Of a DNA stretch of 64,000 nt, positions 30,385 to 43,263 are shown in pieces (the first letter of the stretch is position 1; each line of letters opens with the position of its first letter). The DNA is from Phaeosaccion multiseriatum (taxonomy: Eukaryota > Protista > Ochrophyta, other classes), in contig OZ218959.1 in the NCBI GenBank assembly GCA_965112735.1, positions 1,674,001 through 1,738,000 of the forward strand, in the 5' to 3' direction. The notes beneath the pieces were generated by a model. It saw only the letters and a program-made list of their open reading frames with translations. It was not told the origin of the DNA and searched no databases. Position numbers and translations under genes: made by a program.

Positions 30385-33300
30385 ATGCCGCCAGAACGGG
30401 TGCGCTCCCCCAGCGGCAGCGGAAGGGTCAGAGGTCTTGGCGGTGGAAGTAGGAGGAGTGGCAGTTGTCGCAGCTGCCGCGGCTGTCCAGGACAACGGAG
30501 GCTAAGAGAAAGCGCTGCAAAGCCGCTGCCTGCGTTAGCGCAGTTCGCCAGCATGGGCCCCACCCTGCCCGGCGGAAGCTCGCGCAGCAGTAGCAGCACC
30601 AACAGTAAGAGAAGAAGGACCGGAGATGTCAGCAGCGAAGCGTACTGCGCCAGCAGTAGGGCTTACCGGCACCGAGCAATTTTTGGCAGCAGCAGCAGCA
30701 GTAGCAGCAGAAGTAGCGGTAGGAGCGCCAACAGCAGCCTGGTGACTCGGCTGCTCCTATTGAGCGTAGGGGTCCTCTTCCTGTCCAGAGGGGCGGACTC
30801 TCAGTCTCGTTTGCTTTGGAACGACGAGTTCAGCGGCTCTTCGCTGGACCTCGATAAGTGGATCGTCGTGACGGGCGACGGTTGCCCTGAGTGAGTACAC
30901 GCGCACCATCGCGCCTTTGGCGATCATGTTCCTCCTAGTGCATTGAGTGTGACTTCCCCATGCATCGTTCTGTATTCGGGGGGCTTGGGGGGAGGGGAAT
31001 ACCGTGCAGACTGTCACCATGCGCATCACTCTGTACTTCCTTCTTAGTGGGGGGCTAGTGAAGCCTGAGTGTGAGTGTGAGTGTTCGTTAGGAGGAGCCT
31101 AACTAGTGCTGGGTGGTCTCTCCCGTCCTTTCGCCTCCACAACGTCCTCCCCCCCCCCCCACCCAGACGCTTCGTTTCCCGTGCTTTGCCACTGTCTCTC
31201 TGACGGGAGATCTCCCCTTTGTGACTTCGAATGATTGATGGTGATTATTGATCAACTACTTACTTCCACTACCTCATCCATCTACCCAACACACAACACA
31301 TACACACTCACACGCACATACGCACACACACATACACACACGAAAGGCAATGCAACTGGGGGAATTACGAGCTGCAGAGCTACACGGAAGACAGCGTAGC
31401 GGTAACCGGTGGGCAACTGCGCATCACGGCCAGCAAGCCGCCCGTAGAAACGGAGGAGGGGTTATTCTATAAGAGTGGGCGGTTAATGACCTCAGAGGAA
31501 TGGTCCTTTACGTACGGCTACGTGGAGGCGCGCATCAAAGTGCCGAAGGTCAGTCAGTCAGTCAGGCGGAGAGGGAGGGAGGGAGGGAGGGAGGGAGGGA
31601 GGGAGGGGGGGAGGGGGGGAGAGAGGGAGGGAGGGAGGGTGCAGAGAGGGTGAGGAGGAGGGGGGAAAGAAAGGAGGGAGGGTCGGAGGGAGAGAGGGAG
31701 GAGGGAGGAGGGACGGAAAGAAGGTGGAGAGAGAGGAGGGAGAGAGGGGAGGAAGGAGGAGAGAGAGGAGGGAGAGAGGGGAGGAAGGAGAAAGGGAGGG
31801 AAGAGAACAAGGGAGGGAGGGAGTGAGCTGTCGTCTCCATTCCTTTGGCGGGGCCACCCCCACCACCACCCCTTCCGTGTCCCTGTAAGGCCACCAAACC
31901 TGCAGATATCCCAAACCAATTACCGCAACTACCGCCTGTCTAACGCCGGTCTCCTCCTCCCCCTCCTCCTCTTCCTCTTCCTCCTTCTCCTCTCCTCCTC
32001 CTCCTCCCCCTCCTCCTCCTCCTCCTCCTCCTCCTCCTCCTCCTCTTCCTCCTCTTCTTCCTCCTCCTCCTCCTCCTCCTCCTCCTCCTCCTTCCTCCTG
32101 CCCTGGTGTTTTTTGTCATCTCTTTCAACGGCTCCTTCATGATTCTGTCAGGGGAGGGGACTTTGGCCTGCCTTTTGGATGCTGCCCCAGAATCCAGAGG
32201 TGTACGGTCTGTGGGCCGCGCATGGCGAGATCGACATCATGGAGGTACGAGGGGCGGTTTGGTTTAAGAAGAACGAAAGTAGACCCTCTGTTTCTTTCCC
32301 CCTCTCCCTCCCTCTCTCTCCGTTTCTCTCCCTCTCTCTCTGCCTCCCTCTTTCTTCCTCTCCGTCTCCATCTCCCTCCGTCTCTCTCTCTGCCCCCCTC
32401 TCTCTTTCTCTCTGTCTCCATCTCTCCCTCTCTCCCCGTCTCATCTCCCTCTCTCTCTCTCGCTCTCTATCAAGTGTAGCCGCTTGTGAAGTTGGGGTCG
32501 CACGTACTTGAAGCATCGCCTGTGATGTCAATGATCACTACTCCTTTAGCCAGTCTTGAGCCACACCTCCTCCTCTCCTCACTCAGTCCCACCTCTCTTC
32601 CCCCTCCCCGTCTCCCCTCTCCCCCCTCTACCCTCCCTCCTCCCCCCTCTCTCCCCTCCAATTGGTCGCGGGATGGATCGATGGCAAAACCGTTTCAAAC
32701 CGTTACAGAATGTGAACGACATGGACGATCTCATTACGACAACGCACTTTGGAGGGACGTCCCCCTACAACCAAAATGCAGGGTGTGCTTTCGACTTTAA
32801 TATCGACTACTCCGAAAACTTCCACGTGTACGCTCTGGACTGGAGAGAGGATCGATTAGACTGGTAAGAGTGGGCATTGGGGTTAAACCCTCTGCCCCAC
32901 TGATTGGGGGTCTATTGAATCTGAAACGGAAACTGAGGATTAGAGGGAGGGTGTCTTTGGTAGATTCATCGACTTCCCGTCCCGAGTCTCTGTTTCTCTG
33001 CCTCCCTCCCTCACCCCCCTCCCTCCGTCCCTCCCTCCCTCTGTCTGCCTCCCTCGTTATCTCCCCCTCAGGTATCTTGACGGGACTCACGTATGCAGGC
33101 GGGAGAAGTGGTACACCGATGCCGTCGACGCCAACGGTAATAGATATCCACAGCCCGCACCCTTCGATATCGACAACTACCTTCTACTCAACCTCGCCGT
33201 GGGTGGGCAGCTGCCCGACGTGTATCTTGGATCGGTGCGTGCGTGTATGTCTGGCCCATGCGTGCGTGGGCCCGTGGGGGAGATTGGAGTACATCAAACC

Positions 33301-36300
33301 TCGAGTACATGAATCCTCAGTCCCCCTCCCCTCTCCTCTCTCCGTCCTCCACCCTCCACCCTTCGCTCTCCGCTCCCCCCTCTCACCTCACACGCAGGTG
33401 GATGATTCAGCCCTACCCGCCACAATGCTTGTGGACTATGTACGAGTGTACTCAGACAACAAGCCTGACACCGTGAAGCCCTTCTTCGGCCACCGTCTCT
33501 GTGTGCCTAACGACGTTCTGGAGGCGGAGTGGTTCGACCTGGGAGGGCAGGGAGTGGGTTACAATGACACAGATGACAAGTGAGTCCAGCAGTTGGTGAT
33601 AAAGAAGTTGGTGATGCAGCAGCAGGCGTATTGATGGTGGTAGTCCCCCCCCCCCCTTTGAATGAATGTGCCTGGCCTACCCCGCCCCTGCCCTGCCCTC
33701 CTGGCCCACCCTGCCCACCCTTCCCCTTCTCCAGTCTCTTGTCTCTTCCCCTCACTTCTTGTACTACCCTTGTTTTTCTTTCCCTGTGGCTTGGCTGCCC
33801 TTCCCCTCCCTCCTCTTGCCTTCCCTCCCACCCCTCCCTCTGGGCCTTCTCACGCCATTCCTTCCTTCACCCCTCTTCCTTTCACTGCCTTCGACAGTAA
33901 CTTTGGAGGCAGCTACCGCACTGAAGGGGTGGATCTTCAGTCCGATGAAATCGCTGGCACCACGAGCAGTGGAGGTGTACATGTCATGGAGACCAGGGAG
34001 GGAGAGTGGCTCAGCTACAGGTGAGGAGTGAGGGAGGGAGGGAGTGAATGTGTGGGTGAGTGAGTGATAGTGTGCGTGAGGGAATGCGTGTGTGCGTAGT
34101 GAATGCGTGTGTGTGTGCGTGGGTGAGTGGGTGGGGAGTGAGCACGTGTCCTATGGAGACCTTCTCCTCCTCCTCCTCCTCCTCCTCCTCCTCCTCCTCC
34201 TCCTCCTCCTCCTTCTCTGCTTCTTCCTCCTCCTTCTCACGTCCTTCCCTTCCTCCCCCCTCCTCATTTTAGCGTCTACGTCACCCGAGACGGGACGTTC
34301 GACAGCACCCTGTCCATCGCCTCTTTGGCAGCAACAGGAAACGTGTCCCTGTCCCTTGACGTGGACAATTGCGATGAGGCGGGGCGGGGAGGGAGTAGCG
34401 ATCTCACTGGCAAAGTTGCGGTCGCTGCGAGTGGATTGGGGTCGTTCTACGAGCTTGACATGGGCCAGATTACGCTGACGAAGGGTGAACACAAGTGAGT
34501 GAGAGAGTGAGTGAATTCGTGCGTGAGTGGGTGCGTGCATGCATGTGTGTGTGTGTGTGGATGGGTGGGCGGGCTTGTGCGTGTGTGTGGTTGAGTGAGT
34601 GAGTGAGTACGTGAGGGAGTAAGGGGGACAGGAGGGGTTGGTGGCGAGCTGATTTCCTATGCCTTTGCCCTCTCTCCCCCCCTCCTCCTCCGTCTCCTCC
34701 CCTCCCTCCCTCCACTAGCCTCAAGCTCTGCATCATCGACCAGGTCGGTACCAACCTCTACTTTGTCATCGACAAACTGTCCATCACCGAGGATGGGGAG
34801 ACATCAGACTTCACTCGCTCCTCCTCCTCTGATGCCCAATGCGCGTCGGGCCGTGCGAGCGTGCCTTACACATTGACTGGCGATCACGCCGGGCCATACC
34901 CACTGCCTTGCACGATTGAGGCGGAGTACTTCGATCACGGGGGTCAGGGGGTGAGTGCGTGTGTGCGTGAGTGAGTGAGTGAGTGAGTGAGTGAGGGAGT
35001 GAGTGAGTGAGGAAGGGAGTGAGTGAGAGTGCGTGAAGGGCGACGGGCGGACCAGACACCAAGTACTGTGTACCCAAGCCATACACCTCCGCATCAATGC
35101 TAGACGTAGACAGTGGAGAGCTGAGAGAGAGATAGAGATGCTGCCAATCGTACACGCTCGGCTACTCGTGCTCGCCTGCCTGCCTGTCTCCCTGTCTATC
35201 TGCCCACTTGCTTGCCTGTCTGCCTACCCGTAAACTAACATCGAACCTTGCCCCCTTTGCATCCCCTCCCCTGTGTGTACACGTGCGTATATCCCTATTA
35301 CCTACATCGTGTGTCACTCACTCACCCACTCACTCACTCACTCACTCCTCTCAGCTTGCTTACTTCGACAATACTCCTCGGAACAACGACGGTCTTGCGA
35401 CCCTCCGCCCCGGCTCCGGTGTAGATGTGTTCGAACCCTTCTCTGGCAGCATGCGCGGCTTGTGAGTGTGACTGACTGAGTGGTAGCTGTGATGCTGTGA
35501 CTATTGGCTGACTGATAGATTGACTGACAACCTGACTGGCAGACAGACACACTGCTGACTGACTATGTGACTGACTCACTGAATGACCTCCTGACTATCC
35601 CTCCTTCCCTCTCTCCTCCCCTCCTCCCTCCTCCCTCCCTCCTCCCTCCTCCTCCCTCTCTCCCTCCCTCCCTCCCTCCCTCCCTCCCTCTCTCCCTCCC
35701 TCTCTCCCTCCCTCCCTCCCTCCCTCCCTCCCTCCCTCCCTCCCTCCCTCCCTCTCTCCCCCCCTCTCTCCCTCTCTCCCTCCCTCCCTCCCTCTCTCGC
35801 CCCCTCTCTCCCTCCCTCCCTCCCTTCCTTCCTTCCTTCCTTCCTTCCTTCCTTCCTTCCTTCCCCCCTTTCTCCCTTTCCTCACTTCCTCCCTTTCCTC
35901 CCTTCCTCCCTCCCTCCCTTCCTCCCTCCCTCCCTCCCTCCCTCCCTCCCTCCCTCCCTCCCTCCCTCCCTCGTTCCTCTCCTCTCCTCTCCTCTCTTCT
36001 CCCAAGGTACGTTTCCTCAATCTCGGCTGGCGAGTACCTTGCCTACACCGTCTCTGTGGCAGTGCATGCCAGGTACAGTGTTGCAGTAGCAGTGGCCACC
36101 GGCTCCAGTGGGGACTTTGCCTTCAGCATCTATGCAGGGGCCACGGATTGCAGCAACAGCACGGGGGGCTTTGATCTGCTTGGAGGCTCCCATTCCTTCA
36201 ACAATACAGGAGGGTGAGTATGACAGGGAGGGTGTGAGGGACGGAGGAGGGAAGGAGGGAAGGAGTGAGTGACGGAGGGAAGGGGGGACAGAGAGTCAGG

Positions 36301-37117
36301 AGGCGAGTGAGGGAGTGGCGGAGGGAGGGAGGGAGGGAGTTTTAATGAGGGGGCGAGTACGTCCTCCTAACCGCTCTGTCTCCCTCTCTCTCTCTCTCTC
36401 TCTCTTCTCAGCTTTGAGTTATTTCAGGAGATAGTGGTGGAGGATGTGGCCTTCCCAGCGGGCAGGTATCGCCTCTTGTTCTGCGCCGACAACGGCACCG
36501 ACTTCAATCTCGATTACATTCAGGTGGGTGGGTGTGGGTGGGTGGAGGGGTGGATAGGTGGGTGGTGGATGGCAGTGGATGCATTGGTGGGTGGATGGCA
36601 GTTCATGTTTTTTATCAATGGGCTCTTCTTTTGGTGCACGTGTGTGTAGCAAGCTAGAGGGACGGCGCACAGTGCCCGGTACCAGTGCCAAGGGCCGTGC
36701 GTCCTGTCCTACCGTACTACTCTCTCTTATCCTCTCTGCACTCCCCTCCCTCCCGCCCCCCTCCCCTCCCCTCCTCTCCCCTCCCCTCCCCAACCACCCC
36801 AGGTGTTCGAGCCGCCGCTGCCCACCCCGGCCCCGACTCCCATTCCCCCCTTCATCCCCAATGCCAGTGAGGAGTGGTCGACAACCAACATTAGTGTCAT
36901 CGTTTGCTCTCTCGTCGCGGGTGTGTTTATCCTGTGGCGCGTGTATGTCATCGTTCGCGCCACGGAGGAGAGGAAGAGGAAGGCTAAGCTGTTTGATGCC
37001 AACTTGGCTGCCTATGAACAATCACGCGGAGTCGGAGGAGGTAAGTTGTCTGTAATTATGGCTAGACTGTCGGTGTGTCTTTCTTTCTTTCTTTCTGTCT
37101 GTCGGTGTGTCTTTCTT

Positions 37118-37188
<71 letters not shown>

Positions 37189-39720
37189 GCGTATCTCTCT
37201 TCTCTCGGTACATCCTGTCTGGAGTTGGGATGTGCTTAAATCTAGATTTCGTTGAGGAGAAGGAAGGAAGGAGGGAGGGAGGGAAGTGGCGGCTCTGCCC
37301 ATCACATACAGTTGTACTGTAGACGTGTTCTTACAATCTTACATCGATACCCACTCTTCCAACAAAACAACACAATGGCGTGTTGGTCCGGCGCCCTCCT
37401 CCTGCCGTCTCCCTCTGCCCCCCTCTACTTCTCTCTCTCTCTGTCCCTCTCCCTTGCTGTATGTTTCGAAGGCGCCAAGTACGCGGTTGACTACCCTCAT
37501 TCCGCCTCCCCAGGGGGGCTAAAGACGGCTCCTCCCAAGCTTGCGCCGGGCATTTTCTCCAGCGGGGGGGGCGGGGGCGGCGGCGGGAGTGACTCGGGAA
37601 CAGCAACCGAGGCCGGGATTGCCTACGCTGCATCTATGCGCTTGTATGGTGGTGGGGACGGAAAGAGTGAAGTCACAAGTGGCATGCAGGAGCAGTATGA
37701 GTGGGAGCAGATGATGCGGGAGGAAGCCAAACGGGGGGAGGAGGGCGGATGGGGTGCGGGGGGCCAGCAGCAGCCGGCGATACGCCTCGCTACCGCCCAC
37801 ACGCAGCTGGCACCGGGGCAGCCACACTCACATGCAAAGCACAAGCCCAATGTGCGCTCCCAGCACCCTCAACCTGTGTACCAGCAATATCAGCACCAGC
37901 AGCAGCAGGAGGGGCATCAGCGAGAGCAAGAGAGCACGAGTCCAATCGGTCTGGCGCGGATGAAGAGGCGGAGTAGAGACGGGAGAGGCCCTGTCGCTCC
38001 ACCCGTACGCAATAATAGCGCAAGCACGAGTAGCAACAGCGTCTTGGGTAATGGGAGTGGCATGGTGGTAGATGACTCGGACGACAGCCGAAGCTCCTAC
38101 CTCTTTCCTGGGCCGGACGGGGGTCGCCAGCTGAATAACCCCATGCGCCTTGGCGGCCTGGGGACCAGCAGCAGCACAATGAATAACTTCCTCAGCGCGC
38201 CTGGCAAGATGATGATAGTCAGCTCGCCGCACTCCCTTGATGGAGTGAGGATGAATCCTTTGATGGAGGCTCGGCTTTGTGATGAGCTCAATGTGAAGGA
38301 GACGGAAACCGGGCATGGACGGTTTTTGTCACCAGAGGACGGCTTACGGGTGAAATACCCGCTCTCGCCGCCGGACGAGCGAGCGGATGAAGGCAACAAC
38401 GATGTGCAGGAACTCCGACTGGTGGACTCTGCTCTACCCTCCGATGCCTTGGACGTGCATGCATTGGAGATGGAGGATTTACAACATCATCACAGCCAAT
38501 CCCCCGCCGCGAGTCTGGGTCGATTGCCAGATATGACGGACGGCGATCGAGGGCGGATGAGTAACCGAGAGCTGTCGAGGATGCGGGCAGCGGAGGCGGA
38601 GAGGGAGGAGAGGCGCTTATATAGTGGGAGGAGCAGCGACGACGAGGAAGACGAGGAAGGGGCCTCATGGGCGTCTGACTCGGACGATCGAGATGATGAA
38701 GACGATATGCATAGGCAACGGCGGGCGGCCCTGATGGAGTCGAGTGGGAGCGACTGGAGCGACAGTGAGGTGAGCGGCAGGGGGGATGGACTCGACGAGT
38801 CAAGAGGGAGCCTTTTCTACGGAGATGGAGCAAGAGGAGCAAGAGGAGGGGGAGGAGGAGGCGGGGAAGGGTTGGAGGTGGGAGTAGGGGACGGGGGGGG
38901 AGGAAGGGGCGCGGATCCTTCCTCCTCCCCGCGTTTCTTCTCTTACAACAAGAATATCTCCCGGATGGCCTCTCCACGGCCGCCCATCATCACTGCCAAC
39001 ACCTCGTCGGGGAGCCAACTAAACTTTGGTAGTCTGTCCGCCAAGGAGATTTCAAGATTGGGTAGCGGACCCCCCACTCGGGACCCCTTTTCTGAGGCGG
39101 AGCTGTTCTTCAACAGCACGGGTGGCTCCGGGCAGAGCGGTGGTGATGCCAAGGAGACTGGCTCTGTTGTAGGAGGAGGAGGAGGAGGAGGAGGAGGTGG
39201 TGGGTCTACGGCAGGGGGAGGAGGAGGGGGTTCGGGGTTAGGTTTGGGGTTCCCAGCAGCAGAGGACAGTGGCAACACCTCCAACCTCGCTCTCAGCTTT
39301 AGCAGCTTTGCCAGCAATGGCACCAGCAAGTGGGCTTGTCTCAATTGCGAAATGTTGAATGCGGATTGCACGGACACCTGCCACGCCTGTGGGGCCAACA
39401 AGAGGGCGGGGCGATCGCGGGCGAACAGTCGGACAGGCAGTCGCGGCGGGAGTCACGGAGGGGGAGGGGCGGGGGGAGGAGGGGGAGGAGGGAGCATCTC
39501 CAGGAACGGCAGTCTCGGGGGAGGAGGGGGCAGCATCCAGAGGAGTGGCAGTTACGGGGCAGGGGGAGGCAGCTTTGGGAACAGGGGGGCGGAGCAGTGG
39601 TGGAGCAACGGAGGAGGAGGGGGAGGAGGAGGAGGGCCTTCTGCCCAGCAGGGGCAGAGCAACAGCATGAGCGACGACGATGCGAGCCTGGACTTGGGCT
39701 TGGGGCCTGGGCCCGAGTGA
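30385..39720 (+). CDS. Type I membrane protein: GH16 laminarinase-like domain, 2x CBM6-like modules, Pro/Thr stalk, TM, ~770-aa disordered cytoplasmic tail with RanBP2-type zinc finger (start 30385 or 30553)
   Basis: Spliced in phase: LLWNDEFSG, WGNYELQSY, YKSGRL, FTYGYVEARIKVP, GLWPAFWML, GEIDIME, FHVYALDW, APFD..YLLLNLAVGG, MLVDYVRVY. EAEWFDLGGQGVGYND...EGEWLSY and IEAEYFDHGGQGLAYFD...AGEYLAY mark the CBM6-like modules. TM ISVIVCSLVAGVFILWRVYVIV then RKRK; WACLNCEMLNADCTDTCHAC at 39331-39390. Confidence 0.85.
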
Positions 39721-40415: not shown

Positions 40416-40583
40416 CAAAAGGGACAAGAAATTTAAGTCAAAATAATGTACGTGGCCGCAGTGTCCAGTTCCAGCTGCACACCCCCGGGGTGGCTGTATG
40501 GGCTCAAAGAGACAGTCAGTCATACGCGTATCTTTAGGCCGCTTTCCCTCCCTCATCGCTTTTGTCTTCTCTACATAAACAAC

Positions 40584-43263
<2,680 letters not shown>

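Follow-up and report, generated by a model that had tools for sequence, protein, structure and literature searches.

A candidate membrane-tethered laminarinase with a long, disordered, zinc-finger-bearing tail in Phaeosaccion multiseriatum

The stretch of DNA analysed here (hereafter the window) comprises 64,000 nucleotides (nt) of the genome of Phaeosaccion multiseriatum (contig OZ218959.1:1,674,001-1,738,000), and all coordinates refer to positions within it unless another contig is named. The gene in question lies on the + strand between 30385 and 39720 and, in our model, encodes a laminarinase-type catalytic domain of family GH16, a carbohydrate-binding module of family CBM6, a second module that is CBM6/35-like, a Pro-rich stalk, a transmembrane helix and a long Gly/Ser-rich tail which carries a divergent RanBP2-type zinc finger. 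On balance we lean towards reading the product as a membrane-tethered, catalytically competent laminarinase, in which the disordered tail and its finger control delivery, turnover or partner binding. A first-pass annotation of the same region had joined a signal-like segment, a GH16 domain with the motif EIDIME, two CBM6-like modules, a stalk and one transmembrane helix, by in-phase splicing at 37040/37472, to a tail of about 770 residues with a finger and NPM and NPLM motifs; it had proposed a catalytically competent glucan sensor coupled to intracellular signalling, and its author knew of no described protein of this architecture.

Gene model and the join between exons 13 and 14

The gene region consists of short open stretches on the + strand separated by microsatellite-rich gaps, and is eukaryotic in character. 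We built the exon model by requiring GT-AG sites and continuity of frame, which gave 14 exons, and gathered domain evidence exon by exon, on single exons. The donors are mostly GTGAGT; the introns range from 178 to 603 nt and usually have a long pyrimidine tract at the 3' end. Intron 10 contains a CT-rich microsatellite (35598-35664). Two boundaries are in doubt, namely the donor of exon 12 (36527 to 36541) and the acceptor of exon 13 (36693 or 36803).

The join on which the architecture turns is that between exon 13, which ends at 37040 and is followed by a GTAAGT donor with no in-frame stop nearby, and exon 14, whose acceptor AG (37470-37471) is preceded by about 75 nt rich in C and T. In the model, one base of exon 13 and two of exon 14 form a Gly codon, and the frame then remains open for 748 codons to the stop at 39718-39720. 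In the list of open reading frames (ORFs) the tail is contained in an open frame of 822 codons. Among the six frames this one scores best for codon usage, with a GC content at third codon positions (GC3) of 0.66, compared with 0.62-0.76 in the other exons. The intervening intron 13 (37041-37471, + strand) is 431 nt long and contains a (GTCT)n microsatellite, with a pyrimidine tract leading up to the AG; in length, donor and tract it resembles the other 11 modelled introns. The in-phase splice that was first annotated is therefore upheld, as a gene model rather than as an observed transcript. Read-through at the 37040 donor would add some 70 hydrophobic residues, encoded by microsatellite sequence, up to a stop at 37252, so retention of this intron is unlikely. 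On splice logic, exons 1 to 14 probably form a single transcript.

The same region can be divided into two genes. The GH16-CBM6-transmembrane gene would then end soon after exon 13, through intron retention or an out-of-phase acceptor, and the ORF from an in-frame ATG at 37375, within putative intron 13, would encode a zinc-finger protein of its own, rich in Gly and Ser and located in the cytosol or the nucleus. We consider this arrangement improbable, though it deserves to be taken seriously. Genes are tightly packed here, as a GAPDH-like ORF (40446-40874, + strand) starts only about 730 bp past the stop codon of the tail, and the inspected RanBP2-finger ORFs of this genome are all soluble, with no transmembrane segment near the finger. 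The space between exon 13 and the ATG at 37375, however, leaves only about 335 bp for both a 3' end and a promoter, and has the make-up of this gene's introns, with microsatellites and a pyrimidine tract; the segment that follows the ATG is itself encoded by a CT repeat. Two genes would also have to accommodate the strong GTAAGT donor without a nearby in-frame stop, the hydrophobic low-complexity read-through and the in-phase acceptor at 37472.

Neither the sequencing runs nor the orthologue searches gave evidence for the join. Four sequencing runs are on record for this organism (one study) and none is recorded as RNA; each holds about 95% of the words, introns included, which is DNA-like. 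Word searches with the tail, exon 6 and exon 2, scans of metagenomes and a scan of prokaryote genomes returned no orthologue in which the parts stay together, although the word searches cover proteins only where their length is 0.55 to 1.75 times that of the query, and long fusion proteins could escape them. Exon 9 found no match in the metagenome scan, and exon 2 found only bacterial GH16 genes (at most 56% identity) in the metagenome and prokaryote-genome scans, with gut samples as the source of some of the metagenome contigs. The organism's own genome (67 Mb searched, 22 contigs) contains no paralogue of exon 6, exon 9 or the tail, and the finger region matches generic RanBP2 fingers only. 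We take the gene to be single-copy and lineage-restricted, its 14 or so exons encoding roughly 1,600 residues.

Catalytic domain, carbohydrate-binding modules and membrane anchor

Three exons are collinear on the Pfam GH16 model (PF00722). These are exon 2 (31347-31548), which encodes the N-terminal sheet (Pfam positions 8-52, 15.4 bits), exon 3 (32152-32244) with the catalytic strand (positions 54-76, 13.4 bits) and exon 4 (32709-32863) with the middle part of the domain (positions 81-123, 19.0 bits). No single exon reaches the Pfam cut-off of 22 bits; the scores sum to about 48. Exon 2 alone matched solved endo-1,3-beta-glucanases, with ULam111 (5wut, E = 4e-8) first, followed by the Zobellia (4crq), Thermotoga (3azx) and Pyrococcus (2vy0) enzymes (5wut, 4crq and 3azx at E = 4e-8 to 1e-7). 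Further along, the same solved laminarinases were matched by the next exons up to the beginning of exon 6: exon 4 at residues 157-173 of 5wut, exon 5 (33072-33219), which holds an LLLNLAVGG-type strand, weakly at residues 213-234 of 4bq1, and exon 6 (33398-33579), with the last GH16 strand, at residues 215-233 of 6jhj and 241-264 of 3azx.

Comparison with bacterial genes gave the same order. In a tblastn search of the window with one bacterial GH16 protein, exons 1, 2, 3, 4 and 6 were matched in sequence, exon 1 at 30808-30876, and in a local tblastn against 160 bacterial GH16 loci each of exons 1 to 6 matched many loci at E < 0.01 (62 for exon 1); bacterial matches numbered 157 for exon 3 and 34 for exon 5. 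The catalytic motif E-x-D-x-x-E is intact (E-I-D-I-M-E, 32227-32244), as the earlier annotation had stated, and its claim of catalytic competence is supported in silico, the catalytic residues being preserved in what the sequence places among laminarinase-type domains. All of the best solved relatives are endo-1,3-beta-glucanases, and by these comparisons the domain is of laminarinase type and not of KRE6 type (GH16_2). Membership of the latter group was rejected, as the two exons that matched Pfam SKN1_KRE6 (PF03935) scored 16.2 and 11.9 bits, where 30 is the cut-off.

Exon 2 is 51-56% identical to genes of metagenome-assembled genomes of gut Firmicutes (Christensenella, Eubacterium), a high value for an alga-bacterium pair. 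With identity to bacterial genes of up to 56% over this exon, the domain can be called bacterial in type, and the catalytic domain may have been acquired by horizontal transfer.

The last GH16 strand in exon 6 is followed by a short linker and by the start of the first binding module, which continues through exon 7 (33898-34020) and has its core in exon 8 (34273-34494). Its matches are weak and collinear. The end of exon 6 aligned with residues 342-361 of 2y8k (E = 0.7), exon 7, whose sole matches in PDB were CBM6 chains, with residues 364-400 of the same structure (E = 0.4), and exon 8 with positions 42-102 of Pfam CBM_6 at 14.4 bits, under the cut-off of 28.9. The matches of exons 6 and 7 are contiguous on 2y8k, and this backs both the CBM6 call and the exon 6/7 splice junction. 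Exon 9 (34719-34950) completes module 1 and, after a Ser-rich linker, begins module 2, whose opening motif is nearly equal to that of module 1 (pairwise E = 2e-5). Within module 2, exon 10 (35355-35461) was placed by splice logic only, its PDB matches being noise; exon 11 (36007-36213) aligned weakly with residues 61-100 of the CBM6 of the beta-agarase 2cdp (E = 0.2) and resembled CBM_6/CBM_35 clusters of the Atlas (0.80-0.84, a lead only); and exon 12 (36412-36541), which would supply the last strands, follows from the exon model. None of exons 7 to 12 matched any of the 160 bacterial GH16 loci in the local tblastn. Of the two CBM6-like modules first annotated, we rate the first, on three exons, as a probable CBM6 and the second only as CBM6/35-like.

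In the CBM6 region (33580-36411), five introns out of six are in phase 2, between the second and third bases of a codon, and the intron positions differ between the two modules; on account of this difference, the introns were probably gained after the module duplication.

Exon 1 (30385-30890) ends in a GTGAGT donor and encodes an Arg/Ser/Gly-rich N-terminal stretch, a hydrophobic segment (30739-30786) and the first GH16 strand. The signal-like segment of the earlier annotation is therefore present, though not in the form of a classical N-terminal signal peptide, which we rejected: the segment is short and internal, 117 residues past the first ATG (30385) and 61 past a second ATG in better context (30553), and the stretch between ATG and segment has a coding-like score in that frame. 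This hydrophobic segment could serve as a signal anchor or be a long signal peptide, or may be preceded by an unseen exon; in every case the GH16/CBM part faces the lumen or the outside.

Exon 13 (36803-37040) encodes the Pro-rich stalk, a transmembrane helix of 22 residues (36890-36955) with a mean hydropathy of 2.39 over 19 residues, and a basic juxtamembrane stretch. Stalk and single helix accordingly agree with what had been annotated. The run of Arg and Lys directly after the helix fits a cytosolic C-terminus by the positive-inside rule.

The disordered tail and its zinc finger

The tail is encoded by exon 14 (37472-39720, stop codon included). Its 748 codons come close to the length first given, and with 20% Gly and 13% Ser, including seven Gly runs of 5-11 residues, the description as Gly/Ser-rich applies. 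An AlphaFold2 model of the tail alone was mostly coil with two short helices (mean predicted local distance difference test (pLDDT) score 38.6), so that the tail is predicted to be disordered. A Pfam scan of the tail found no domain, and no further transmembrane segment was seen in it. Neither a word search, nor the organism's own genome, nor a HMMER search against 1.84 billion representatives (zero hits) yielded a relative of the tail. The tripeptide N-P-M and the tetrapeptide N-P-L-M do occur as annotated, at 38137 and 38254, where about 0.09 would be expected from composition (an estimate, the motifs having been counted after the fact). We know of no established motif that matches either, and rejected them as such.

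The one recognisable element lies near the end of the tail. The consensus W-x-C-x2-C-x3-N-x6-C-x2-C is matched exactly at 39331-39390 (+ strand), as had been reported, and nowhere else in the six frames of the window. None of 20,000 shuffles of the tail matched it, and about 1e-9 matches would be expected. Four of the six Cys of the tail are used by the finger, and a fifth lies in its loop. The best matches of the finger in the organism's own genome were PF00641 fingers (E = 0.007), and a gapless alignment with 16 of these kept the W, C, C, N, C and C positions throughout. A hidden Markov model built from 18 own-genome fingers gave the window finger 20.0 bits, compared with at most 11.8 for 200 shuffles, and its look-alikes in the Atlas were PF00641 clusters (0.88, a lead only). 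An AlphaFold2 model with the family alignment as input, which biases the fold, had a core pLDDT of 94; in Foldseek at least the top 20 matches of this model were RanBP2/NZF fingers (Trabid NZF1, Nup153 and Nup358 among them) at 0.5-1.1 A, with E-values of 0.19 or more, which are not significant. From its sequence, we classify the element as a divergent RanBP2-type zinc finger.

Fingers of this type are known to bind ubiquitin, Ran or single-stranded RNA. Ubiquitin-binding NZF fingers have Thr-Phe after the second Cys and a hydrophobic residue before the fourth, and Ran-binding fingers have Leu-Val at the Thr-Phe position. Alignment with the own-genome fingers places Glu-Met at this position in the window finger and Ala before the fourth Cys, so that the ubiquitin-binding residues are not present, in line with the lack of the Thr-Phe dipeptide noted at first annotation.

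Two other loci of this genome concern the same finger family. The closest own-genome relatives of the window finger belong to a tandemly duplicated gene (C11:194425-194682 and 201150-201371) with three NZF-type fingers in a frame of 475 codons. On another contig (C5:2524986-2532434), nine identical-scoring RanBP2 fingers, spaced about 920 bp apart, lie in one frame of 2,921 codons, which encodes a repeat protein resembling Nup358/Nup153.

A tail of this composition might also be without function: a recent, fast-drifting, low-complexity extension, perhaps from expanded GGN or AGC repeats, in which the Cys cluster is the remnant of a dead finger. The Gly runs, the lack of relatives and the very low predicted confidence are what such an extension would be expected to show, and the finger scores under all members of its family. 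However, the frame has stayed open over 748 codons even though about 3% of random codons would be stops (an estimate from base composition), its codon bias matches that of exons elsewhere in the gene, and the finger retains every one of its six consensus positions at exact spacing. We regard a functionless tail as highly improbable.

Function, known relatives and genomic setting

The genome contains at least 54 matches to light-harvesting complex (LHC) proteins, many in tandem, as well as three GT48 glucan-synthase loci, KRE6-like loci and about ten GH16 loci. Given the LHC proteins, GT48 glucan synthases and KRE6-like proteins that it encodes, the organism is likely to be a beta-glucan-storing alga; the set corresponds to the toolkit for chrysolaminarin-type storage in ochrophytes and haptophytes (PMC7965971, PMC10543733). 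The breakdown of the stored glucan is poorly assigned in stramenopiles and haptophytes, where GH16_3/4 laminarinases are uncorrelated with storage and targeting predictions are unclear (PMC7965971).

Under the membrane-tethered laminarinase reading, the ectodomain would consist of a bacterial-type GH16 domain, active if its intact catalytic residues are a guide, together with one CBM6 and the CBM6/35-like module, all related to their families by homology. The Pro-rich stalk would keep these modules off the membrane, and the single C-terminal helix with its basic inner flank would, judging from hydropathy and charge, put the remainder in the cytosol. This remainder, about 780 residues if the join is correct, is predicted to be disordered, with the putative zinc ribbon as its sole recognisable element. 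The enzyme would cut beta-1,3-glucan wherever the ectodomain faces, most plausibly storage chrysolaminarin in the vacuole, given the GT48 and KRE6-like genes; otherwise the substrate could be glucan from outside, encountered at the cell surface, or ingested glucan inside a food vacuole. The tail may set where and when the enzyme is delivered, by sorting, turnover or scaffolding through the finger and through acidic or phosphorylatable stretches, and a delivery role appears likelier than signal relay.

Several points weigh against this reading. As to the gene, the in-frame ATG at 37375 inside putative intron 13 could start a separate gene, the sequencing runs lend no transcript support, and the searches described above found no orthologue. 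The internal N-terminal hydrophobic segment leaves several start codons and topologies, among them a cleaved signal or a hairpin of two transmembrane segments, and the second CBM6 is weakly backed, exons 9, 10 and 12 having given no useful PDB match. The finger had no Pfam match at E-values up to 10 when pieces of 40 or 60 residues were scanned, is absent among the 50 PF00641 matches of a genome-wide scan, and at 20.0 bits falls below every true own-genome finger (24.6-50.8 bits, leave-one-out). None of the canonical sorting or signalling motifs scanned for occurs in the tail. Substrate and location, finally, we purely infer.

The predicted ectodomain has counterparts in bacterial modular laminarinases (ULam111, 5wut; Zobellia, 4crq; Thermotoga, 3azx; LamCAT, 6jhj), with which it shares a collinear catalytic domain, the E-x-D-x-x-E motif and up to 56% identity over exon 2. 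Some of these have an appended CBM6, and here too a probable CBM6 follows directly on the last GH16 strand. The bacterial enzymes, however, are secreted or lipoproteins, whereas the present gene is eukaryotic, with 13 introns, and would add a second module, a Pro-rich stalk, a transmembrane helix and the cytosolic tail. Yeast Kre6/Skn1 and the TGS proteins of diatoms and haptophytes (GH16_2) are likewise membrane-anchored proteins of GH16 fold with a disordered cytosolic extension and a role in beta-glucan metabolism (PMC7965971, PMC10543733); they differ in being type II, with tail and anchor at the N-terminus, and in belonging to another subfamily, true members of which lie elsewhere in this genome.

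The finger can be compared with those of Npl4, Vps36, TAB2/3, Trabid, Nup153/Nup358 and ZRANB2, whose Cys spacing, Trp and Asn it shares, and from which it differs in lacking a Pfam match and in having Glu-Met for Thr-Phe or Leu-Val. To our knowledge, the proteins with RanBP2/NZF fingers are all soluble and cytosolic or nuclear, and in none is the finger part of the tail of a membrane glycosidase. The membrane setting is unusual within this genome too, since the other RanBP2-finger ORFs that we inspected (a SNF2-type helicase, a triple-NZF protein and others) are all soluble.

Carbohydrate-binding ectodomain, stalk, single transmembrane helix and long non-enzymatic tail also make up the layout of a receptor. 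In a true receptor, beta-1,3-glucan from parasites, prey or the cell wall would bind to or cluster the GH16/CBM6 part, and this would be passed through the membrane to partners of the finger and tail. The alpha subunit of horseshoe-crab Factor G offers a partial parallel: it combines a glucanase-like module with two tandem CBM6-type (xylanase Z-like) modules which bind beta-1,3-glucan cooperatively, raising avidity (PMC7915573). Compared by shared families only, Factor G differs as a soluble haemolymph protein with a serine-protease subunit and with no anchor, cytosolic part or finger. A second parallel is a functional analogy only. Fungal wall sensors of the Wsc/Mid2 type have a carbohydrate-binding ectodomain, a stalk, one transmembrane helix and a short, non-enzymatic cytosolic tail; they share the order of parts, but their domains are unrelated, their tails short, and they have no catalytic domain.

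Beyond this layout, the evidence points away from a receptor. The catalytic centre is intact, unlike that of GNBP-type sensors, and on this ground an enzyme is to be preferred to such a sensor; Pfam scans of the tail found no kinase, TIR, death or other output domain in the cytosolic part. The tail is an unconserved orphan, and its finger is without the residues that are known to contact ubiquitin, Ran or RNA; no evidence tells a signalling tail from a trafficking tail. The receptor idea is attractive but founded only on the order of parts, whereas the preserved active site, like the lack of an output domain, favours the enzyme, and we hold a true receptor to be distinctly unlikely. If anything less likely again is a new kind of algal glucan receptor, without counterpart in plants, animals or fungi, in which a live GH16/CBM6 ectodomain reports beta-1,3-glucan of parasites, prey or the own wall to a cytosolic finger in a scaffold-like tail. 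The earlier proposal of a glucan sensor coupled to intracellular signalling is accordingly not supported: the cytosolic part is predicted to be disordered, and has neither an output domain, nor a signalling motif among those scanned, nor relatives.

The layout itself is unusual, and the earlier remark that no such protein was known agrees with our literature search, which found no precedent for GH16 plus CBM6 plus a transmembrane helix or for RanBP2 fingers in receptor tails. If the single-transcript model is true, a bacterial-type laminarinase has, in a beta-glucan-storing alga, acquired introns and been fitted with both a membrane anchor and a very long tail in the cytosol. The product would then be a candidate for the controlled degradation of storage glucan at a membrane, and its RanBP2-type finger, carried on the tail of a glycosidase of the membrane, would occupy a setting for which we found no precedent. 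We regard the gene as a testable lead rather than a discovery, as its tail is an orphan and both the join and the function are inferred.

Elsewhere in the genome we noted two kinds of repeated genes. Polyubiquitin is encoded by at least four arrays, each with 4-10 repeats arranged head to tail (C11:1716911-1719178, 1652066-1653193 and 1865409-1866308; C5:3279446-3280573). At C9:474910-521083, eleven near-identical, intronless LHC (Chloroa_b-bind) genes lie at intervals of about 4.5 kb; the six of the - strand and the five of the + strand make up two blocks that stand head to head near 498-499 kb and so form a large inverted tandem array.

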